Shown: positions 1-23,960 of the stretch, one piece after another | Position numbering within the stretch: position 1 is the first letter of the stretch | Layout of the letters: the number at the start of each line of letters is the position of its first letter | From: Oikopleura dioica | Lineage: Eukaryota > Animalia > Chordata | Reading direction: 5' to 3' | Assembly (NCBI GenBank): GCA_907165135.1 | Contig: OU015569.1 | Coordinates: 2,728,001 to 2,792,000, forward strand | DNA length: 64,000 bases | Notes under the pieces: generated by a model | The model's database searches: none | Told to the model about the DNA's origin: nothing | The model's input: only the letters and a program-made list of their open reading frames with translations | Made by a program: the position numbers and the translations under genes

Positions 1-3000
1 CACATTTGACAATCGCCAGTGTTTATCGTCAGCGATCGAGAGCTTTTCCGAGCTTTGACTTGAGTAAGTTTGTGAGTTATTGTTGCTCCACGCGCCTCTT
101 GGACCAGCCAAGAAGCGATTCTGTCTTCTCCAGCTTCGGAATGAGCCTGCATGTTGGTTTACTAATTGTCTCTTCGCTTTTTCATAACGCTTGCGTTCGT
201 TTTCAAGGAATGTTTTGAACGGCTCGTTCAAGTTCCCTTCTAGTAACAGCTTTGCTTCTCCACTTTGCTTGTCGCGGTGATGTGACTCGATTATTGCCAG
301 TTCCGAAGCTTGCTGAAGAAGTAAATTTATTTCCACGATTCGGTGATTGTCTAATGATTGTTCGAACTTGCTCGCTGCAGGCGTTGCGACTTCAGTGATG
401 AATGCCATGATTTCATCGGACTCGGTGTACTTGATAAATGAGTTCTGGAACTGCATTAAGTTTCCTTCGCGTGCAGGCATATTCGGCATACGAGACGCCG
501 CCCAAGGAATAGAATCGACAAGATCGCGGATGACTGGAATGACGAAACTGGAAACACGCTGATCGGGCTCAGACAACACGAGAAGAATTAGCCCGTTGAG
601 GACGAACGCCGCGCTCTCCGGTGAGTACCGATTGTGGCCAACAAGAAGACGATGGAGCTGTGAACTCGCTTCAGCGATGACGGAAATCTTCTTGCTCTTC
701 ATCGAGTAAACAAGAATTGCAATAGCAATTGCCTGAAGTTCGGGCCATCCATCAGATTCTGAGTTCTCCCAGACAAACATGGCGTCCATCAACTTCACGA
801 GTAATTGCAAATCTGCCTCTTCCAAAACTTTCGTTCTATTTGCCTCAAGAAAGTAGAAGTTGTAGAAAAGAACGCACAAGGTTTCACCATCCTTCGCACA
901 ATTGAAAGAGTCAGAAGAATCTTTGTAAATTTTCAGAATTGCCTTCTCCACCCACTTTCGGATCAGCTGCTGACCGGTGATTACGTACATCTCGATGCCG
1001 ACAAGTCGTTCAATTGAGCACAGTGCGGCAAGAGATGCTTTCCACTTGTCAAGATGAGTTTGACGTCCTTTGGCTGACCCATTCCAGGATATTTGGTAGA
1101 TCGAGTTCACTACATTTTCTACGAGCTCTTCGTGAACTTCTTCGCTTACAGCTTCACTGGCAAACTTATCACCGTGGGGGACTTGAAGAAGACGAACCAG
1201 AGTATCTTGCCATCCAGCGATCGCAGCAGCTTGCCTCGCTTGTTCTGGACTAGCAGAAAGCCACTCGGAAACGAGACTCGCTGTTTTCAGCTTTTCTTTC
1301 ACTCCTGAATGCGTGCCAATGTAGTGGACGAGTGCAAGGCGATCGGAAATTGTAAAACTGCACGTAAACACGACATCAATGAGCAAGCTATGCGCTTTAC
1401 GGGATTCTGCTATTTTAGATTTTAGAAGTATTCCGAGAATTCCGCCGGCTGAGGAGAGTCTCAATCGACCTCTGTATTCTTCCGAGACATGGGACGACTT
1501 TAACAGGAGCAAGAATAAGTTTAGGATTGATGAATGTAGTTCGGGTGCGTTTTCAAGCGTAAGAAGATACCAAAGAAGCTCTCCTTTTTCAGCTTCGAAC
1601 ATGATTCGTACAAGATTCTCGCAGCCTGGTCGCCTCAATAGCTCAATGCAGGATGTAAGTGCTTCTGCAGCGGCGCTGACTTCTGATTCCGAGCCCCCAA
1701 CTGAGCAAACAATGATGAAGCTAAGAATCGCGTCGATTTCGTCTACGTTCGTGTTTTTGAGCATGTAAAACTTGACTAAAGAAAAGATCGCCCCGCGAAC
1801 TTGCTTTTCGTCTTCAGGAAGAATGCCGATATCCATCGATGAAACTGAGCTTCGGGTTGATAATTCACCATCCCTACTCGACGACGATGGGAGCGGAAAC
1901 GACTTGCAGCAGTACGTCCGAATGACATCGAGCATGAAACAAACGCCATACTGTGAGCGATTGAAACGTTTGGAGTCTTTTATCAAAGTAGAAAGATACT
2001 GAACATGACTGACTCTTGTAGCGTAGTCAGAATGGCACCACACTCGGAAGTCGAAAAGCAAGTAATGGCGAATATCGGATACAAGATCAGGAAACTCCGA
2101 AACTGGAAAAGCTTCAAGTAATCGCTGACATTCGAACAGAAAATTTCCATCAATCAATGGACCGGGGAACTTTTGCAAAAGGGCTCCAAGGATCGCAAAC
2201 GAATTATTCTCCACAGCAATTAGTTTCAATGGAACATCACTCCCATTGAGCAGTTTCCGCAAAAGTCTTATAAAAATGGCCATCGGATGTAATTGAGTAC
2301 GCTCAGATACCGGCGGCCATCTTTTTATTTGATCAAGAAGTGGAAACATAACCGAGATGCCTGAGAGTGCATGAACAGCCGCTCGAATATCAGGAGCACC
2401 ACGTAGTCTTCCTGTCAAACAGGCATCGTTTCGCCCTGTCGGTGCCAGATTCCGCACCGAGTAGGAGTCGCAGTTTTTCGGGTGATAGTAAAGACGCAAG
2501 AATATTTGAAAGTCAGATGTTGCCGAATTGGTTGATTGAAATTGAACGAGAGAGTTTGGCCCCCACTCTGAAAGAAGCTGAATCAGATTTTCAGGGACAG
2601 CGGCGTTGAGAAGCAGCTGGTATCCTATCAGTCCGTGAACACTTCGAGGACGTCCCCAGATTCTATCCCTTGACTCAGCTTTGCACCAGCTTACGGAGCC
2701 GTCGTCGTTGAATTCTTCGCTCTTCGACTTGGTCATTTTAGACATAATGCTTCCAAGAGCCATGCCGGCCATTCCAGAGATCGAATTCGACAGGGGCATT
2801 CCTTGACTTGGCATGTCCAGGCCACATCCTATTCTCACTTTGAGTTTATCCGTCGATGTGGTGGTCAGTTTGTGAGAACAGATCAAAAACTTGTCGATGT
2901 AAATGCTACACGTCGCGGTGCCAGAAAGCAACGAAGCAGGACTCAGTTGGACTGCGATAGAGTGCCACGAAGAGTCGACGACTGATTTTTCCAGCTCCGC

Positions 3001-5145
3001 AGTGACGGTAGTAAAGGAGCTTTTCGATAAATGCGCGAATACAAGCTTATTTTGGTCGGAAATGAAAAGCTCGTAGCCGCAATAGTTCTTGTCCAGGAAA
3101 CTGAAGAGAACTCGTCTCCATGAAACCTTTACCGGAAAAGGATCAAGACAGAACCAGCCAAAGTAAGTAAAGCCATTTAAAAGCGGCTGGATATAATCCG
3201 ATGACAGGCCAGTCCCTTGATCGTACATTTCGAAAAAGTCCTGCGCGGGCGAACGGTCCATCGGAATTTCAGACAAGCACTGGAGCAAAGCTAGCCCGTA
3301 GGATTGTTTGTCATGGATGAGCTTGAGCAGTTTTGTCAAATTCTCGGTGGAGATAGCGTACGATGACACTGTGGAAATGATAGAAATGACCTTGTCGACA
3401 ATTTCTCGAGGAACATGGCTTTCGTGTGCTTCTTCTAAAATGAAATGTTAGATTTGGTGTGGCTTGAAGAATCAAGATTACCGAGATAGTTGAGGAGAGC
3501 TCCAACGATGTCAGCTTCGAAGCCCAAGACTCGATTCGCCGTCGAGTATTTGAAGAGATCTTCGATCTTCTCAACTAGCCACAGGCGAATAGACTCGTCC
3601 ACTTGCAACAGCCAAGTGACTGTAAGAGTCGGAATTTCAGAAATCTTGAGCCGTTCGAAAGACGTCCCTTCATAAGTCCGCTCCAAGCACTAAACTCATT
3701 CATAGCAACATAGAAACACTTGAAAGTCTTTATAAATCGACATGCAATTTGACGAATAGAAGAATGGACACAAATGTTAAAATCAAATAAATGAAGAATA
3801 AATGAGATGAAGGAATCACATAACTGATAAATTGTTAAATTATTCACCGTTTTTAAGCTTTCTTCTTTGAACTGAAAGTAACAGTAATTTACACCACTGT
3901 TGCGCTAGCTAACTCCTGATTTGAAGGTTAAAAATTCTAAAAGTACTTCTTGGAATACAATGTTACTTACGAAGTGAAGCAGTCTGGATATGAACTGTTT
4001 TTGGTTCTTTGTTTGCCAGAAGAGCGGCTCGAGCAAGTCCTTCCAAGATCCCCAGACGTCAATAATCGCAGCCTTCACGTTTTCATTGTTGCTCGAGAGT
4101 CTCTCTACAGTGGAGAGGAATGTATCAGCGTCGATGTTGTCAATGTCCTCGTCCATCAACGATTTGAGAATTGCGAAAAGGCCGTTTTGAAGAAAGCTCA
4201 TTTGCATGGTCGAAATGTCGCCGTTGTTGCTGTTCGATATGATGCGATTGACCGAGGAGAGGAACTGGCTGTTTGCGCTGTGGCGAATAATTGACAGAAA
4301 ACAGGAAATGCAGTCGCGAAGCGGAATAGGCTGAAGACCCTGAAGGATGATGGTTGAAAGAAAGTTAGTTTGAAAAAGAAAAGTACCTTGAAATTGTGAG
4401 TAGAATAAATAAAACGCTCGAATAATCGAAGAACAAGCTCGAAATGCCCGTTGAAGTCTTCGCCAGGATCAATCGAGCGCCGCAGCTCTTGCTCCAAAAC
4501 AGTTAGCAGCTCTTGCGTGAGCAGCAGTCGATGATGCGCGATATTCGAACTGAGCAAAAGGCCGTACACGCGCAAAACGAGCCGCTTCTTCAAAAAGCCG
4601 CCTGAGCCAGAAAAGCTCCCCACGGCTCTGGCGTAATCCACCAAAGGTCGAACGAAGTCTTCGATGTTTCCCCGCGCCGTCGTGTCAGATTTGTTCTTGC
4701 AGTTTTGGTCCCGCCAGTTTCTGCGGGGATCGATGATGATTTCGAAAAACTCAAACAGTGTGTCAAGAAAGATGCTTTCGAATTTCTCGTCGTCGGAAGA
4801 GTCCAGCACGGAGGAAAAGCATCGCGTAAGAAACTTGATTGAAATGTCCGTCGAGCGAGAGAATCGCCGTAAAACGTGAATGAGACGGATCAGCTTTGTT
4901 TGCTCGATTTCATCTTTATCTGAAACAATGATGTAAAAATGAATGTCTCGTAAGAAGAGGATGAGTCTTGCTCTCTTACCTAGCATAGATTCAAGCTGCG
5001 TGGCGAGAGCCGAAACGGTATTTTGGGGGATATGATCTAGCGAAATATCAACCGAGGCTTCTATTATCACTACAACTTCAAAAAGATCGCATTCTCCAGA
5101 GGCAAAGCGCTGCCAAACGGCGTAAAGCCTGTCCAATTCCGTCAT
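1..5145 (-). CDS. NBEAL1: Neurobeachin-like (NBEAL1/2) protein, N-terminal part; runs off the left edge
   Basis: Manual translation gives LWLVEKIEDLFKYSTANRVLGFEADIV, FTYFGWFCLD, VLFSFLDKNYCGYELFIS, DSSWHSIAV and RIWGRPRSVHGLIG, matching the NBEAL ARM and ConA-like region as recalled. GT-AG intron near 4330-4386. The minus frame below ~3400 appears to run off the edge. BEACH/WD40 domains are not in the window. Confidence 0.75.
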
Positions 5146-5225
5146 TTTTAGAATTTTACATTCTGAAAAGAATCCTTTTATTTATAATTGGAATCTTATT
5201 TTAGATCACATGCTACAATTTCACA

Positions 5226-6316
5226 TTAATCTAGATTGCTTCTTTTCGGTAAATGGCTTGCTCCCAGACACGGTACATTTTTAAACGTTTAGCGCGATTT
5301 ACTTGAAGTCTTCTATCAGTCAGCAATTGCTCGCGTTTCAGACCAGCCTGGAAAAAGAAGAATTAGCAACTTATCGTGGAACTAGAAGAGCTACCGATTC
5401 AAATAAATTAGCAACATCTTCTTCTGTAAAAAAGTAGACCAATGTTCCGTCTCCTCTTGTGTAGGTATTTTCGCCTGCTACTCTTGTTGGCTTATTATGA
5501 GTTTTAAAAATTTTCGATGAAAGTGGTTTATCAGTAGAATTCCGAATGTTTTCAACCCTTCCTTGAACCTGAGTTGCGACATGTCATATCTTCCATAGTC
5601 GCGGAAAAAAATATCCCCGCCGGGTTTCAAGCAGTCCGCCATTTTCGAAATGGCATTCTTCATTCTGTCAAAGGGCAGGGCAGATAGCACGAAGGTGCAA
5701 ATGATCACATCTACTTTTTCCGGAATTTCAATCGCCACGTCACTCGCCAAATCATGCTGAAAGATATGCCCTCGATCGCCGTATTTTTTCACGAGTTCTT
5801 TGCAAATTTCCACGCTTTTTGGAGCGAAGTCACAACCCAGATTTGAGTTCGATCGTGCTTTTCTACATTATAATATAAAAAACAAAGTAATCTTTTGAAA
5901 AAATTCGAACTCTTTCCGAAAACTTTGTAATTCTGATGCGAAGTCGTCGCCTCCAAAAGCGGCACCACATTCGACCCATTTCCACAGCCCAGCTCAAGCA
6001 CAACCAGTTCCGGCGAGTTCTTCGGATTTAACCGTTCAAACTCCGTGAACAACCAAGACCGGTCTTTGAAGAACTTGTTTTCGTGCTTTTCGTAAAAGCA
6101 GTTCCAGTTTTCCGAGGCCGTTTCTCCCGCCACTTTCATTCTTTCTTCCACATTTTCCGACTTCTCGATTTGCTTTCTGATCTGTTCCAGCGCATTTTCC
6201 TCCTGTTGTGCGTCCCATTCGACGCGGTCCCAAGCGTTGTGTTTGAAAATTTCACTGTCTTCTTTTATCAAGCGATTTCCGAATTGCGGCCGTTTTTCTG
6301 TCTCTTCCACGGTCAT
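5226..6316 (-). CDS. METTL2: tRNA m3C methyltransferase METTL2-like (multi-exon)
   Basis: FGNRLI...FKHNAWD, WNCFYEKHENKFFKDRSWLFTEF, LELGCGNG, FVLSA...LKPGGDIFFRDYGRYDMSQLRFK and C-terminal DRRLQVNRAKRLKMYRVW; stop TAA at 5228-5226. Confidence 0.92.
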
Positions 6317-17284: not shown

Positions 17285-17557
17285 AATTGACGTCGAAACG
17301 AAACCTTTCCTTATTTTTTTCCTTATTCTTTTATAAATGTCAAATGCGTATACTCAGTATACTGCATCGTTTTAGACTTCTTTGATTTCAAAGTATATAC
17401 AAGCCTTTTAGCCCTGTAAAATAAACCTTATTTAAAATATGCTGTGATGTCTCTCCAACTACCTACAAACTTTGTAATACCCAACAGAAATGCGTTCAAC
17501 CCCTCGTTCAACCCTATTTATTTACTGTGCTGATGTAGAATCTCTCCAATAACTGTC

Positions 17558-20500
17558 ATCAATGTTCATTCCAGGCACTACTAGTTTTATTTGCAAGCAG
17601 GGAACGGCAGTGATAGTACTTTTCAGATTTGAGGTTGATTTCTTTGAAAACTTGCAAATTACAAGTCTTCTTTTCTGGTGCCCTTCCACGAGGTCTTGGG
17701 GTGATATGCGCTCTTCTTGTAGATTTTGCGCGCTGCGTCTGGAGAGTCGTCGTATTCGGAATTCAGAGTTTTGCATTCAGGGTCTTCTTCTGCATTAAAA
17801 TTCTATTCATTCGGAAAAAAAGGCGATCTCACCTTCTGGGATGTTGTCGAGCAGATGGTCCCGTGCGCCTCTGAAGGCGACATCTTGTTGTGAGACTAAA
17901 TCGGCCTCTACGGAAGGAGTGCGTCCACTAAAAGTCCTTTGAAAAAAAGTAAGCTATGGAAAATGTACCGGAGGAAAACGGGCCCGACTCGGAGAGAGTT
18001 CATCACCTCTCCCAAGGACTCGGAAATCATCGATATCAAGCCACCAAGCCAGGCAAGGCCAGCAAGCATCCACATCAAGACTTTTTTAATTCGCGAAATA
18101 TGAACTTTTGGATAGAATATGAATTTTTTCGCCGAGTTTCCTATTGTTCGATAAATCTCCAAGAAAAAGTTCAACCATGCGGAATTGTCGATGTCGCCTT
18201 GCTGGAAAGCTGGAACGTAGTCGCCGAAACCAACAGTTGTAAGCGTAATTATCGTAAAATACCAAGCGTTGAGCATCTCCCAGCCTTCTAAGAAGTGGAA
18301 GCAGACAGCGGGAATTATCTGAGCACGTTTAACAACTGATAAAGCAAGCGACTCTTTACCGAGAAGATCAAGGATCCGAAGAACACGTAAGCAGCAAAGA
18401 TTGTGAATGCTTGTCGTTTAGTAGGGGTCTTTCCGTAGATGGAAATGAGTATTTGACTCATGTAGAGTTTGAGTGTGTCGCCGATTTTGCCCATGAAGAA
18501 TCCAAAGAGCGGAATGGACGTTAATGCATAGAACACGCTTAAAAATATATGACTATCTAATTCTGTCGTAGCTCTTACCAGAAAATCTTGCCGCCACTCG
18601 TAGTTGGATAGACATTTCCATATCCAATTGTCGTCCCGATTGTTCCAGTAAAGAAGAAAGCGTTCCGGTAGGACCAGAGATTCGGGCAGCCGAGAGTTCC
18701 ATCTTTTTTGATGACCATTTTCGTCTTTGACGGATGGGGAACGTCCAGTGAGTCCAGGAAACCTTTCTTTGCTTCGTGCGCCTTCGTTGCTACAGAAGAC
18801 GTTTCAGTGCCCTTGGAGCGGAAAATATAGCTTGCCTTTTTGAGAGTAACGAGGAACCATGTCCATGAGATTCTTGACCAGCTCGTTTTTGAACTAACTC
18901 TTGGGTCTCGATATTGCCTAATCCGCTAATAAACGCTCGCACTACTGTATCGCTGGCCCGTTCATTTAGTTGCTGCTCTTTTTGCCTGAGAAGGGCATCT
19001 TTCGCGGAGATGGACATGTTGAGCTTGTTTAGCTCATCTTTGTACTACAGTATCTAAATCAGCCCAAACAAAATTTTTCACACGACCTTCATTTCGATCA
19101 TTTATGAGTAGAAATGAGATGAAGACGCTGAATTAAAGAGCTCATTCGCGACTTTCTGACACATAAAATCCTTCTTTTGGGCAAGAACGATCATGGCCTC
19201 TGAATCAAGATAGATTCCGTCGACCGAATTTGCCCTAGAATTCGTCCATTACTAATTAACATGAGTTGATGATGTGAATTAGATACTTGGCCATGAGCGC
19301 GATTCGCGTTTGGAGGAGTTCTTCGCGGGTCAAGTGAACCTGCTCCGTTTTCACGACGATGGTGGCGGTTTTGTTGGTAATCACTTCAGATGCATTCCTT
19401 ACCTCGGACTTGAGCCCCTCAATTTCGTCGGCCTTGTCTTTATCGACAATGACGATAGACTCTTCTATGTCTCCAGACTCTTCGCTTTTGTGCTTTACGA
19501 CCTGGAGTTGTTTTCTTGATGGTTTGTGTCCCTAAATTACTCCCGTAACTACCACTTCTGCTGGAATTCTAGTTATAGGCGTTGCCAGAGTAATAAAACA
19601 TCATTCACCTTTGACATTGCCACCTCAGTCACGATTGTCCCCTGCTCAAAGTTGATAATTGCATTGCCAACGAGGAGAGCAGATTTCCCATAAGTTTCAT
19701 TCTTCAGAAAGAGCTTATTTATAGCGTCGATCTGGTTCGCGCCATTTTCGGGATTTTCTGAGACAACTACACGAAAATTATAAGTTCATGTCAAACCAGG
19801 CACAGCTGAAGCTCTGCGCCACGTGTCTTGTTGGCAAGAAGAAAACTTACAACGAGATGTGGTGTGCCCTTTACGCATCTTCCACAACGTCACTTCAGCA
19901 CTGATCATGAATTCCTCGATCTTTGCCAGCTGGCTTGCTGCACTTCGTTCATAACTTTTGCGAGGGAAAAAACTCTGTCGCCGTCTGCAAGCTTCTAGCG
20001 CATTTTGGAAAGGCTAGATTTGATCCCCTTCCTAGGCATATCCTTGAAAAATCGCTGAGCCGCATGCCAAACGGAATCTTGCACGAATCCCTCTTTCAGC
20101 GCCGTATGAAACTCGAGTTTTGTTGGGAAATTCGGGAATCCACGTTGTCGCGTCGCTTTGTACGAAATTTCGCCGCTCAGTTTTCCTATTTCAAAATATT
20201 TTCAAGCTATTCAGTCGACAGATTTATACCAATGCCACTGTAGTTGCCGTATTTACTAGCCACTTCTTCTTGGGTAAAGTATTCTGAAATCTTTTGAGCA
20301 TTACTGTTATAAGGGTTGATTTGTGCGGGTCGCGGCTTCTCAGATTTTGAAACTTCTTCAACGGGTATTTTATGTTTTTTGATAAGAGCCATTATGTCCT
20401 CCTCTTCCTCTGTCGTTTTGTTCCCTGAAATTTGAAAGTCCCAACTTAGCCCAGGTTGCTTTGCAACACAAAAGTATATCGCAATATCGATATACGGCAT

Positions 20501-22588
20501 GTTATATACCTCCAGTATATATTCTTTCAATGCGTCAAATGGAATTCCAGTTTGACGACGGACTCAGTATAGCTCTTATACTGAACAGTTCTACGCTGAT
20601 AAATTAAATTTATCATTAGGTAGTGACCTGTATAGAAGCTTCTTGACATTGTGACCCCTGTCGCCTGGTTTTGGGTCAAGAAATTCGAAATAATTTCCTT
20701 CCCTAAGAATGTTGTGAAACAATTCTCGCGTCCCAGTTTCGGCCACGGATATAGATATGGGTTCCTTTGTGAATTAGCGGCGAAAGCACGAGCGCGCAAT
20801 TACATACCGCGACATCCTGCCACCAGTAACACCGTTGTTAATTGCCTCCTTGCTACTTACTGTGATCTGGATTACAGTTTCTATTCGTTGAGTCTGTAAA
20901 GTCGCAGTCAACAGCAGGCTCTTCGACAGGTCCCCACAAACTTTGCTTCTGACAGATGAGCTCCCCATTCGATCGCTTATAAATTTGGTAAGGGCAGGAA
21001 CAAATGTAGTCTCCGCGGCGATTGAGACAGATGAATGGCTCCTGGCACTGGTGAACTCCTTCTTCGCACTCGTCGATGTCGAAGCATCCATACTCGGTTT
21101 CTTCGCCAGGATTAGCGTACGGCCGCCCCCAAGCGTAGCCGATCGGACATGTTCCTACACACAGATTTTTCTCATCAGTGGGTTGCCTTCAATCGTCAAT
21201 ATAAAATGACTAGCGCAATAACAAACACAGAAGATAGGTAGTTATTGATTTAATGTGTAAAGAAACCCTTTCAGAAGAATAAAACTGGCCACCGTCGCAT
21301 TGACAGGTGTACCCCTTGTCTTGACGGGAGTCCAAGGCGCAGACACTTCCTTTTGGACAAGTGTTGCCCTCGCATGGACTTTTTGGCTTCGTTCTTTTAC
21401 AGATTGTTGGAAGCTGCTTGTGGCAATTTTTGTAGCGGAAATTCGGATGGCGCTTCCAGCTGCTCACATGGCGATTGTATTTCGAAAAGGTCGTCTTCTT
21501 CCACGCCCAACATGTGGTATCGCATGGAGTAGCCCCTGTCTCTCTGAAAAGGAGAGTGTCAAACTTTTCCAACTTGCGTCGCCTGCGATCAGCAAGTCTT
21601 AACTTACTTGAGCCTTAGCCACAGCTGGAGCGGCTGGGCAGCTAGAACCTTGTGATGAAGAAATATGAGTTCGTCCATCGATGTCGTCGATGTCATCGCC
21701 CAGTCACCCAAGAACTCACATCTGCTTACTGCTTCCGTGTATGTCATTTCTTCGTTGATGACCCTAAGAATAGTTCAACCCGAAAATGAGTAATCGAATT
21801 AAGTGCATTTAGTAAATTCTTTTCGGGAAATATATTTTGCTTTATTTCGCACATTTCCTTGTCAGGATTGACCTTTGATGACAAGACGATCTTTTTTATT
21901 TAGGGATACGTTGAGCTGCAGGAAAGTTGAGAATCCCAACTGTCAAAATGATTCATTTTTGACAAAATGTGATAATGGACACTAATGTGGTCAGCGCGAT
22001 GAACCTGTATCTCTTTACTACTGTAATTTAAAAGTAACTGTAGTAAACCTGAATATTTTACGGCTTACCGATAATTGTCGACGTCGTAATTCTTCGTGAT
22101 ATTTTCTAGCTTCCTGAGTTCCCAAGTCGTATCCCAGTGCGCCTGTCTTTTTCTTCTTTGTCCCGTCAGATATTCCATTTCTCCGATTCCGTTGTCGACA
22201 ATGCTAAAATCGGTTCTTTGTTCTGATAATTTTAAATTTTTACCTCAAAGCTCTTTGAATCGTCATCGAGTCATCATTATCCGTGAGCAAAGAAGTATCC
22301 ACTTCATTTTCAATCTTCAAGCTTAAATTCTGAAGACGGGCAATATTTTGATATCGTTCATTTTCGATGCTAGTAATAAAATAACAGTTGATTTGAGAGA
22401 CAACTGGACCCACCTGCAAACCCGTTCTTCTTCAGGTTTTTCTAGCCACATGAAGACAACTCCTCCGATGATGATGTAAGTGAAATAAACGATGAACAGG
22501 AAAATGTTCACGTATCCTAGTAAACTCGGTTCAAAGGTGAAATTTTATGCTCCCTGAAATATGCAAGCGGAAGGCCACCCAATATCAT
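17558..22588 (-). CDS. Two-pore-domain K+ channel (K2P) with a large lectin/EGF insertion in the M1-P1 loop
   Basis: M1 [24 protein letters not shown] at ~22430-22500; P1 [17 protein letters not shown]; M2 [11 protein letters not shown]; P2 [19 protein letters not shown]; M4 [13 protein letters not shown]. Intervening exons encode CTL, EGF and Ca-EGF motifs. 3' end approximate. Confidence 0.85.
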
Positions 22589-22740
22589 TGACGTACTTAA
22601 TTTAACGCCTTTCTATTTTACACCCTTTTTCTACATTCCAATTGAATAATTAGTGAATAAAATTATTAATTAATAGATGAAATAATATTTCAACTTGTCG
22701 TGACTTTCGAAGAATAGCTTTAGTAGGGAAATTTTGAAAA

Positions 22741-23960
22741 TTACCGATTGATCTGCCCTCCATCGAGGACATGACCGATGTCCGGATCATCTTCGTAAAG
22801 TGACCGCAACTCTGATAAGTTTATAGTAGTCCTCTATAACTCTTCGAATGTAAATTCGTGTACTTGTATGAGCTATCGATTAATCAACGCGCTAGCCTCA
22901 ACTTGACGATCTCTTTCTGACCCTCTAGCGTTAACAATCAAGAAAACTTAAGAGCTTAATGCAAAATGCGCCAAGTGCCTTTTTAAATGTCCACTCGTTT
23001 TCCGAGTTTCTTTAAAACTTTCTTTTTTTTTTTGTTAAATATCTAATATAAAAGAATAATTAATATATGTACATCGGTGAACCTTTTGGACTTCTAAAGC
23101 TTCAAAACACTTTCTTTTTGAGATGAAATTTTATTTATTAAAAAATCAGTGACCAGTTTCAGACTTCAAACCTCGATCAAGAACGAATGTATCAGTCGCT
23201 GTGAAAAAATCTTGAGGTTCTCGCTTGATGCTCTTCGACTTCGATAGGGATCGATCCAAGGACTTTTCGTGGGACTTGTTGTCTCGCGTTCGTGGAGATC
23301 GAGATCGGCTAAAACAATAAGATCTTCCAGGAAAGCTTTCTCACCTTCTGGGTTGACCTTGAGAGTCACTTCGGAATCTGCCTCGTCCGTCGTTTCCAGC
23401 GACATCGCCTCCCCATTCTTCTCGAACCTGAAAAAAGGCAATTGAAAAAGAAACCGAATCCAAAATTTTACTCTGAACACGAGCTTGATCTTCTGTCCGC
23501 AGAAATAACGACCATCGAGTTCTTCGACAGCGCGTCGCGCACCATCCTCCCGCTTGTAGCAAACCACTCCGCGGTTAAATCCATGATGGCCTAAATTCGA
23601 AAACCAATCTTTTTTGAACTGATAAAAGAATGTTTACTACCGTGGGCACCCGCATAAGTCACTTCTCCAGCCTTTTGCATGAATTCCTTGAGATTAAACC
23701 AGCTAAATAAAGCAATATTTGATGTCAAAAATTATTAGTAGGAAAGGTAAAGAATCAACTGGTGGACTTGCTCAAGTGCTAACCTGCATGCCGAGCTCAA
23801 GTTTTCGACTTCCACGGTCCAGGGGGTATTTTTCGGGGCTACGTACATCTTGAAAGTAGGCTTGACATGGAAGGTTCCTCGTCGGTCGTAGCCCTGAACA
23901 CAATTGACTGTCGGCAAGGTTAGGGGAAGGTTCTTACCCAAGCCGGGCTTCGGGAGTCCC
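22741..23960 (-). CDS. SR protein, SRSF4/5/6-like pseudo-RRM plus short RS-like tail (5' end unresolved)
   Basis: [31 protein letters not shown]...GVVCYKREDGARRAVEELDGRYFCGQKIKL aligns with SRSF4/5/6 RRM2; downstream RSRSPR. Confidence 0.7.

Follow-up and report, generated by a model that had tools for sequence, protein, structure and literature searches.

The K2P potassium channels (KCNK family: TWIK, TREK, TASK) carry a GxxVFxxLE motif at the end of M1, a helical cap region between M1 and P1, the filters TIGYG and TVGFGD, the helices M2-M4 and a Pfam Ion_trans_2 match in both pore halves, and the Oikopleura dioica gene described here agrees with them in these respects, its cap region being predicted to be helical. 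It departs from them in that the cap-coding intron houses eleven conserved exons for an unrelated ectodomain. Type II C-type lectin receptors such as CD23, DC-SIGN and the asialoglycoprotein receptor begin with a short cytoplasmic N-terminus, which is followed by a signal-anchor helix, then a helical neck and a C-type-lectin-like domain. Of the two proteins that we propose for the locus (called products A and B), product B would have the same layout plus a candidate proteolytic release site, but its anchor and neck would be the K2P M1 and first cap helix. EGF and calcium-binding EGF modules would follow its lectin-like domain as in selectins, thrombomodulin and CD93, which are type I proteins whereas product B would be type II. 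Two unrelated proteins are made from common 5' exons at the cholinergic locus ChAT/VAChT and at GNAS, and alternative last exons with intronic polyadenylation distinguish membrane from secreted IgM and generate soluble receptor isoforms. The proposed gene would resemble these loci in having one promoter and common first exons, and in that the product would be set by the choice between splicing from an internal donor to a distant exon and reading on to an internal terminal block. In contrast to them, its common exons are coding and would give a transmembrane helix to both products, and its alternative block comprises eleven exons conserved over deeply diverged lineages. In the literature searched, K2P, extracellular cap and C-type lectin were coupled in no paper.

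The window analysed is a stretch of 64,000 nucleotides of contig OU015569.1. On its minus strand the exon for a K2P-type M1 (22516-22414) is separated by 3.6 kb from the P1 pore exon downstream of it, as an earlier note on this DNA had stated, and a tblastn search of the window with the assembled K2P model gave no other M1-like match. The gap between M1 and P1 is filled with coding exons, with about 3 kb of lectin-like and EGF exons after the M1 helix, and these exons are kept in at least four divergent larvacean lineages. The window was compared with relatives' sequences (L003, L017, L020, L025, L026, L030 and L036-L040), a relative's mRNA contig (L001) and three RNA read sets from relatives (X5, X6 and X7, the reads of the latter two called sister-lineage), in which junctions were read from joints and loose ends. 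Exon 1, M1, the exon with RRKRQAHWD, the lectin-like exon, the calcium-binding EGF (cbEGF), the cap exons and P1-M4 follow one another in the same order in window and relatives, on one strand throughout. This order is retained in L017 (3.6 kb), L020/L003 (5.5 kb), the sister lineage and a tandem copy, and the lectin/EGF exons occur together with the K2P core in every lineage examined and in the tandem copy. This anatomy of M1, lectin/EGF exons and K2P core is genuine. We give an even chance to the reading that one transcription unit yields two membrane proteins with exon 1, M1 and the first cap helix in common; the lectin/EGF exons as an obligatory insert in the channel cap are not supported by the evidence. 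The exons shared by both proposed products and those of the channel core are:

22745..22790, minus strand: exon 1, start codon, MIRTSVMSSMEGRSI(G), common to both proposed products
22414..22516, minus strand: M1 exon, first transmembrane helix with K2P end motif; GT donor, phase 2
22303..22369, minus strand: exon 3, first part (3a), first cap helix or stalk
18958..19044, minus strand: cap exon 'Y', YKDELNKL...LNER; phase 0 acceptor; GC donor in the window, GT in sister lineages
18836..18893, minus strand: cap exon E2; GC-AG intron into P1, GT in sister lineages
18579..18789, minus strand: P1 exon, linker, pore helix 1 and filter TIGYG; Pfam Ion_trans_2 9e-9
18360..18537, minus strand: M2-M3 exon
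18141..18318, minus strand: P2 exon, filter TVGFGD; GA donor at its end
17969..18080, minus strand: M4 exon
17659..17927, minus strand: two C-terminal coding exons (17927-17833 and 17789-17659) and stop; AATAAA at 17591

Both pore-loop filters were confirmed, TIGYG in 18789-18579 and TVGFGD in 18318-18141, and relatives have precomputed Ion_trans_2 matches on both pore halves. The P1 exon shows 35 invariant columns across eight lineages, and the C-terminal tail is kept in L003 and L001. The frame of cap exon Y is conserved in L003, L017, L025, L026 and L030; for E2, tblastx against L003-L005 yields KTNLVKTLMTMVPAFADR, and this exon was also aligned with L025. Both cap exons had been missed in the earlier note, whose exon chain followed the wrong frame ahead of P1, where the frames that are conserved cover 19044-18958 and 18893-18836. 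The GA-donor intron after the P2 exon is crossed by the spliced relative P0001/L001, which reads EIYRTI|VLMWML, and 11-12% of introns in this species are non-GT/AG (PMC8008620). With M1, P1, M2, M3, P2 and M4 all present, an in-frame 421-aa model can be assembled, in which 133 residues would separate the end of M1 from the P1 filter, compared with 61-84 in the aligned animal-type K2Ps.

Exon 1 is joined to the start of the M1 exon by six X5 reads (loose end 22744) and is also kept in L017 and L020. The M1 exon has 86% amino-acid identity in L017 and is found in L001, and its K2P-specific motif is almost unaltered across all lineages. Since the M1 donor has phase 2 and a single base is required at the P1 acceptor, a direct M1-P1 join is out of frame, as previously noted. 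The 44-nt GT-AG intron that had been proposed to lead from M1 into new exons in the window is likewise borne out: in L017 and L020 the first 16 codons of exon 3a run on from the M1 exon as one exon, and in L001 the M1 and exon 3 stretches are joined. Directly after exon 3a stands an internal GT donor (22302-22301, phase 0). This donor (after SLKIENE) is homologous to the one used in L001 (after AEKLME), and its homologues are GT in L020 (ATGA|GTCAAG) and L017 (CAG|GTCATT); each is phase-compatible with the cap-exon acceptor of its own lineage, in L020 by way of a second AG 7 nt downstream. Product A would be made by splicing from this donor across 3.26 kb to the phase 0 acceptor at 19044. Joining 22303 to 19044 in the window leaves a K2P frame of 421 aa without interruption, predicted to encode a two-pore K+ channel with a helical but long cap from exon 3a and the two cap exons. 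We infer this junction from phase and homology; it was in no read or contig examined, all RNA being that of relatives.

Product B would result when exon 3 is read onward into eleven further exons, and the following features would belong to it:

22244..22302, minus strand: exon 3, extension specific to the lectin/EGF product
22069..22203, minus strand: exon 4, conserved furin-type site RRKR|QAHWD
21608..21763, minus strand: N-terminal half of the lectin-like domain, ends LWLRLK; kept in L017
21267..21543, minus strand: C-terminal half of the lectin-like domain and first EGF-like module; 67-89% amino-acid identity in three other lineages
20861..21170, minus strand: cbEGF exon, Pfam EGF_CA E=1e-7, 32.5 bits against a cut-off of 27
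20628..20702, minus strand: exon 8, placed by alignment with L036; frame kept
20230..20424, minus strand: exon 9, acidic/basic stretch, in frame
20032..20185, minus strand: exon 10, GA donor
19851..19954, minus strand: exon 11, conservation with L025 begins only near 19955
19609..19766, minus strand: exon 12, 12-nt in-frame indel against L025; homologous ORFs in L003, L017 and L030
19256..19531, minus strand: last conserved insert exon, eight-sequence alignment, ORFs P0180-P0182; yields the 704-aa product

The end of the exon 3 extension is joined to exon 4 at 22203 by 31 X7 reads and 10 X6 reads, exon 4 is linked to the lectin-like exon by a joint and a loose end at 21764 (25 X7 reads, 5 X6 reads), and nine X7 reads connect the EGF exon ending at 21267 to the cbEGF exon at 21170 across an intron with a GTTTCT donor. 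Relatives' RNA thus supports the exon 1-M1, M1-exon 3, exon 3-exon 4, exon 4-lectin-like and EGF-cbEGF junctions. The furin-type motif sits just before the lectin-like domain as R(R/K)(K/R)RQAHWD in the window, L017 and L020 (QRRKR|Q, KRKR|Q and RRRR|Q) and no other R-x-[KR]-R match was listed when the model was translated; cleavage at RRKR|QAHWD is proposed from this motif. As to the C-type lectin domain of the earlier note, language-model (atlas) features place both halves in Lectin_C clusters: the N-terminal half at 0.92 with 176 shared features and 92 of 100 matches in such clusters, and the C-terminal half with the EGF module at 0.73, in selectin, versican and thrombomodulin-type Lectin_C+EGF clusters. 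Pfam Lectin_C (PF00059) did not match the ORF stretches of the window at E<=1, nor the separate exon halves, from the window and from L017, at E<=0.1; only halves could be scored because an intron splits the domain in every lineage. As candidate framework motifs the sequence shows TYTEAxxxC, LWLRL, CWxW and C...ICKR, and every cysteine of the C-terminal half and EGF exon is invariant in four lineages. By eye, neither of the sugar-binding motifs EPN/QPD and WND was seen in the corresponding stretch of any lineage, and 'lectin-like' is therefore the better name; in this, and in the lack of a Lectin_C score on the separate halves, the domain differs from the C-type lectin receptors. The first EGF-like module gave a weak EGF_3 match (L017). 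The claimed calcium-binding EGF exceeds the Pfam cut-off in the window (start DIDECEEG) and also in L017 (27.3 bits against 27; start DINECDD).

Further downstream, the junction at 20400-20800 that had been left open earlier is resolved by exon 8, which has 6- and 6-nt indels inside and a 1-nt indel just upstream in comparison with L036, and a conserved acceptor CATTCTTAG. Changes in exon 9 against L025 and L036 fall mostly at third positions. In exon 10 conservation extends to GATATGCCTAGGAA and ceases there, and only a GA-AG intron keeps the frame. The stretch PFQNALEAC, taken earlier for the start of a second lectin domain, lies upstream of the exon 11 acceptor in sequence with about 25-30% identity to L025; being unconserved and carrying a 32-nt indel against this sister lineage, it looks intronic. 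The whole of product B would be a 704-aa (or 738-aa) type II membrane protein in which M1 serves as signal anchor and is followed by a helical stalk, the furin site, the C-type-lectin-like domain, EGF, cbEGF and a tail of about 330 residues of unknown fold.

Within the last insert exon and beyond, a 52-nt GT...AG block (19286-19235) is conserved, and four X6 reads pass through it. When it is retained, the frame closes at TAA 19258-19256 in the window. In L030 read-through lasts 5 codons before a stop; the window, L036-38, L025 and L040 have theirs within 9-16 codons, and in L003 and L017 tails of 43-68 codons come first. Two further features separate this exon from the cap exons:

19095..19234, minus strand: fast-evolving stretch from insert to cap exons, 3' UTR or intron
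19045..19094, minus strand: near-invariant 50-nt block with AATGAA, GU/U-rich run, CTGAT branch-point-like motif and acceptor CTGTAG

The fast-evolving stretch, which an insert-core link needs, evolves as non-coding DNA does: it has 1-nt and 7-nt indels among close haplotypes (L025 vs L026; L036 vs L037 and L038), and its conserved blocks are read in differing frames. The 50-nt block shows 92-95% identity as against 77-88% in neighbouring exons, and its hexamer is AATGAA in the window and AATAAA in sister lineages. Product B would end at the stop codon, its mRNA probably being polyadenylated shortly before the cap-exon acceptor, a 3' end that we likewise infer; a poly(A) end for it was not seen in the RNA.

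The main rival, which we consider rather unlikely, is a single 1059-aa K2P whose cap bears lectin-like, EGF, cbEGF and unknown modules, some 640 extra extracellular residues; it may also exist beside a short-cap isoform, the insert being an included or skipped cassette. An in-frame chain to the core, as claimed earlier though along another path, does exist: in the window it is open throughout across GT-AG, GA-AG and GC-AG junctions, by way of a 46-nt exon (19234-19189) with donor GTTCTT at 19188, but it is not conserved. Equivalent in-frame paths are found in L025, L039 and L040, which counts against the two-product model, as does the long M1-P1 distance of product A. In L017 the cap exon is preceded by a good donor (GAG|GTAACA) at a distance of 132 nt, which is divisible by 3, and a candidate in-frame junction was picked out by eye in L003; insert and core are unseparated wherever they occur. 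However, the linking exon is placed among frame-shifting indels, with the frame lost in L036 and L038 (the aligned L037 stretch shares the L038 indels), its donors are weak and vary among lineages (GTTCTT, GTCCCC), and GT and AG sites are so many that chance supplies in-frame paths by the dozen (23-55 solutions per lineage with GT donors only). The read-through stops and a poly(A)-like signal come before the cap exon, and cleavage at the conserved furin site would sever M1 from the pore. A single RNA, L001, is the only mRNA contig linking M1 to the K2P 3' exons. It includes the first ~18 nt of the lectin-path exon and then jumps out of frame into M3; it is therefore aberrant, and fits a long fusion mRNA and product A equally. 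Since the RNA lineage is <90% identical over the K2P core, the read depth there carries no information. The insert reading is thus disfavoured by the non-coding-like 3' link, the stops, the furin site and the phase-compatible internal donor; from the K+ channel of new architecture proposed earlier, M1 splicing to lectin/EGF exons in a conserved arrangement stands, while the obligatory cap insert lacks support.

Operons and trans-splicing occur in Oikopleura dioica. The poly(A)-like hexamer, GU-rich run and strong acceptor within about 50 nt look intercistronic, which would suit an M1-lectin-EGF gene ending near 19070 and a spliced-leader site at 19044 for a separate K2P-core mRNA, the trans-spliced leader of this animal being described (cited in PMC8008620). 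Such a channel would have no M1, or have it supplied in trans. We regard this as improbable: a conserved start codon was not found (the ATG pair 19101/19092 is CTT and ATA in L025 and L026), the first in-frame Met of the cap exons varies among lineages, the K2P-specific M1 motif is nearly constant, and L001 holds M1 and K2P 3' exons in a single RNA. Nor is a K2P known to fold when M1 is missing. Least probable of all, and scarcely credible, is an independent nested gene in which the lectin/EGF exons have their own start and are not joined to M1. X7 reads on exon 4 and the lectin exon far exceed those on exon 1 and M1, but X7 depth tracks the regions in which identity between the lineages reaches 90% or more. 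EGF and lectin modules, being rich in disulfides, require secretion, and there is no in-frame ATG with signal peptide between M1 and the lectin-like domain; moreover, exon 3a runs on from M1, intronless, in L017 and L020, and L001 has it joined to the lectin-path exon. The preferred model of two products is also favoured by the ratio of exon-1 to lectin-exon reads, which differs about 17-fold between X5 and X6 (same variants, small counts).

Both the two-product and the fusion reading are unusual for an ion-channel gene. If the two-product reading is true, M1 and a cap helix of the channel also serve as anchor and stalk of an unrelated lectin-like/EGF protein, probably shed; expression of a leak channel would be tied to that of an extracellular protein, and the question arises whether the M1-and-stalk product pairs with channel subunits. 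If the fusion is true, a K2P cap that includes folded binding modules would be on record for the first time, in a K+ leak channel carrying its own ectodomain for binding a ligand or the matrix. Comparing cryptic lineages can mend exon models where GC-AG and GA-AG introns defeat a GT-AG reading, and the arrangement has been retained despite deep divergence and massive intron turnover in larvaceans.

The locus lies on the minus strand, and its layout is as follows.

Features of the locus in the window
22790-22745, minus strand: exon 1, with an ATG at its start
22516-22414, minus strand: M1 exon, ending GxxVFxxLE as is typical for K2P M1 helices
20702-20628, minus strand: exon 8
20424-20230, minus strand: exon 9
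19286-19235, minus strand: 52-nt GT...AG block, as conserved as the flanking exon
18789 (start), minus strand: P1 exon, filter TIGYG (Pfam Ion_trans_2, E=9e-9)
Downstream of P1, minus strand: M2-M3, P2 (TVGFGD), M4 and two tail exons, with the stop at 17659 and AATAAA at 17591

Exon 1 and the M1 exon are separated by a 228-nt intron. Direct splicing of M1 to P1 is out of frame, as the earlier note had stated: a phase 2 donor at M1 meets an acceptor at P1 that requires one base. In the K2P core (P1 to M4 exons), P2 and M4 are separated by a 60-nt GA-AG intron (18081-18140, minus; junction EIYRTI/VLMWML), which is absent from the L003 and L017 lineages; P0001, a protein fragment from the spliced relative L001, reads without a break across its position. 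Rfam yielded no match at E<=1 over 17400-23100, and nothing convincing was seen on the plus strand of the locus.

The exon chain was corrected by judging coding constraint in alignments with the sister-lineage contigs L025, L026 and L036-L040. These alignments placed exons 8 and 9, where the junctions at 20400-20800 had been left open. Exon 10 was assigned a GA donor at 20031, its initial donor tcc/gtttgg being ruled out by conservation. Conservation likewise ruled out PFQNALEAC as an exon start: the sequence proposed as a second CTL-like start precedes the true acceptor at 19955, in a part of the alignment that lacks conservation and contains a 32-nt indel. The chain previously drawn into the core had to be redrawn as well, as it had taken two conserved cap exons upstream of P1 (19044-18958 and 18893-18836) in another frame; the former pre-P1 frame and donor cat g/gttcc were replaced by the conserved frame with a GC donor. 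Both cap-region introns (18894-18957 and 18790-18835, minus) are GC-AG in the window, and their donors are GT at the same positions in L025, L026, L036, L039 and L040. Introns of O. dioica have a median length of 49 bp, and 11-12% of them are of the non-GT kind (PMC8008620). The intron between exons 8 and 9 (203 nt) contains several blocks within 20430-20625 (minus) that are near-identical in L036, e.g. GCGATATACTTTTGTGTTGCAAAGCAACC, GATAAATTTAATTTATC and TCAAACTGGA; unlike it, other introns are scrambled, and Rfam had no match on its blocks.

With the P2-M4 piece as query, the representative search returned fragments only, i.e. no full-length annotated or transcript-derived protein, and word-index searches for full-length proteins returned metagenome ORFs only. 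A metagenome scan gave 11 loci, of which L025 and L026 are the two near the window's lineage; both are collinear with the window's introns and therefore genomic. Further searches yielded genomic contigs from metagenomes, representing several lineages. The more distant contigs L017 and L020 carry, on one strand and with their order unchanged, exon 1, M1, the RRKRQAHWD exon, the C-half of the lectin-like domain, the cbEGF and the K2P core, with M1 and P1 3.6 kb (L017) and 5.5 kb (L020) apart, and in both M1 and the next 16 codons form a single exon. M1 thus runs into the lectin/EGF path, which bears out the proposal that M1 is spliced into new exons, and the layout is old. The L016 lineage (L016 and L030) has a tandem duplication of a unit consisting of a cbEGF remnant, the insert C-half, the cap exons and the K2P core (~400-5900 and 8041-12510 of L016); the upstream copy has a short cbEGF match with loss of cysteines (PFHTCHRPSPFINK).

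As to the domains of the insert, EGF_CA scored above the Pfam cut-off in both the window and L017, confirming the cbEGF predicted from the sequence, and the first EGF was weak (EGF_3, E=8e-4 in L017). The predicted C-type lectin domain stood in part: Pfam Lectin_C matched neither half of it, an intron splitting the domain in all lineages, while language-model features grouped the N-half with Lectin_C clusters (0.92; 176 shared features, 92/100 matches) and set the C-half plus EGF beside clusters of the selectin, versican and thrombomodulin type (0.73). The cysteines of the C-half are all invariant across four lineages. The domain contains no EPN/QPD or WND motif, and lectin-like is therefore the safe name. 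Directly before it, a putative furin-type site is conserved: R-(R/K)-(K/R)-R, then QAHWD. The last ~330 residues of the insert product had no Pfam match. Long K2P-containing proteins were rejected as precedents for a cap insert: the nine scanned from the representative search carry further Ion_trans_2 stretches, two of them also PAS or EF-hand, and none had a lectin or EGF domain at E<=0.001. The literature search found no paper connecting K2P caps with C-type lectins, and its sole hit for Oikopleura together with two-pore channels, as far as the accessible part of the text goes, was a review on acid sensing.

RNA evidence came from three oligo-dT runs (X5, X6 and X7) of the sister lineage, which is 90-95% alike to the window in patches only; junctions were taken from loose ends, since nearly all reads aligned to the window in part only. 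Exon 1 was joined to M1 in 6 reads (X5), the end of exon 3 to 22203 in 31 reads of X7 and 10 of X6, and the end of exon 4 to 21763 in 25 reads of X7 and 5 of X6, the last appearing as a joint 21764/22173 because the remainder of exon 4 is too diverged for read alignment. The EGF and cbEGF exons (21267 to 21170) were joined in 9 reads of X7, and reads unspliced at this junction numbered 8 in X7, i.e. about half, and 4 in X6. Reads within a 42-nt block and the 52-nt block are hence weak proof of exonic status. The X5 peak at 21057-21089 (~190 reads matching these 33 bases only, with unrelated sequence on either side) is a 33-nt stretch shared with another, highly expressed, paralogous cbEGF gene. 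The complete lack of depth on the K2P core was rejected as a sign of separate transcripts: depth tracks places with identity of ~0.9, and across the core identity to the sister lineage is 77-88% (60-nt windows), below the 90% cut-off. The ratio of exon-1 to lectin-exon reads differed 17-fold between X5 (~6-7 vs 4 reads) and X6 (~3-4 vs 25-30 reads), estimated as depth x bin length.

The last conserved insert exon ends at 19287 and is followed by the 52-nt block, which four X6 reads read through. If the block is retained, the insert frame of the window stops at 19258-19256; the equivalent read-through ends in YLIHITSSC-stop in L036-38 and in ...SSCKLEIEEF-stop in L025 and L040. The stop codon inside the block is present in the window and L036-38 and absent in L039. 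In the next 140 nt (19234-19095), a 7-nt indel separates L036 from L037/L038, 1-nt indels set L025 apart from L026 and L036-38 apart from the others, and a common nucleotide block falls in different frames; this is how non-coding DNA behaves. HFYS-stop (19104-19102) is thereby weakened as a conserved stop, one of the 1-nt indels (L025 vs L026) lying just upstream. The mini-exon ATGatcgaaATGaag (19101-19087, followed by gt) was rejected as a start for a K2P-core protein of its own, both ATGs being missing in L025, L026, L036, L039 and L040. A subsequent 50-nt block is 92-95% identical; it has the hexamer AATAAA, which reads AATGAA in the window, as well as a GU/U-rich run, CTGAT and the acceptor CTGTAG/TAC.

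Exon 3 has an internal GT directly after SLKIENE (22302, phase 0), with counterparts in L020 (ATGA/GTCAAG, phase 1) and L017 (CAG/GTCATT, phase 0). Each of these donors fits the phase of its own lineage's cap-exon acceptor: in the window and in L017, donor and acceptor are both phase 0, and L020 reaches agreement if an AG 7 nt downstream is used. The donor at 22302 is also homologous to the point, after AEKLME, where L001 leaves the lectin-path exon. L001/L002, the source of P0001, is a 1040-nt polyadenylated metatranscriptome contig with the order exon 1, M1, SQLNEEYRILKQLERE, AEKLME, an out-of-frame jump into M3, P2, M4, tail and poly(A). In it, ~18 nt of the lectin-path exon are joined to a cryptic AG within the M2-M3 exon, and P1 and M2 are absent; the joint could stem from aberrant splicing, from template switching or from the assembly.

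A real fusion, i.e. a 1059-aa K2P with the insert in its extracellular cap, possibly as an optional cassette, appears unlikely to us. Its path in the window, with the 52-nt block removed, 19234-19189 read and the donor GTTCTT joined to 19044, is open; if the acceptor is shifted it can also be followed in L025, L039 and L040, but in L036 and L038 its frame is broken. Enumeration of GT-only splice paths was too permissive to discriminate, giving 23-55 in-frame solutions per lineage, so that in-frame status weighs little. The fusion is favoured by the insert never being separated from the K2P core, by a good L017 donor exactly 132 nt ahead of its cap exon and by the presence of lectin-path sequence and K2P 3' exons within one RNA (L001). 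Arrangements other than a fusion or two products take up the rest of the probability; an operon would have to do without a conserved start codon, and lectin/EGF exons forming an independent nested gene would lack both a start and a signal peptide.

Two products from one locus, a K2P and a lectin-like/EGF protein, is a reading to which we give about an even chance. It accounts for the read-through stops that terminate the insert frame, the non-coding evolution of the link between insert and core, the poly(A)-like signal and ultra-conserved acceptor region, the furin-type site, the conserved internal donor and, on few reads, the 17-fold gap between the read ratios of X5 and X6. Exon 1 and M1 would be common to a 704-aa type II lectin-like/EGF protein and to a K2P made by joining 22303 to 19044, a junction that we infer and that was seen in no RNA. 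This junction opens an uninterrupted 421-aa K2P frame in the window, in which the end of M1 and the P1 filter would be 133 residues apart, compared with 61-84 in the animal-type K2Ps aligned here.
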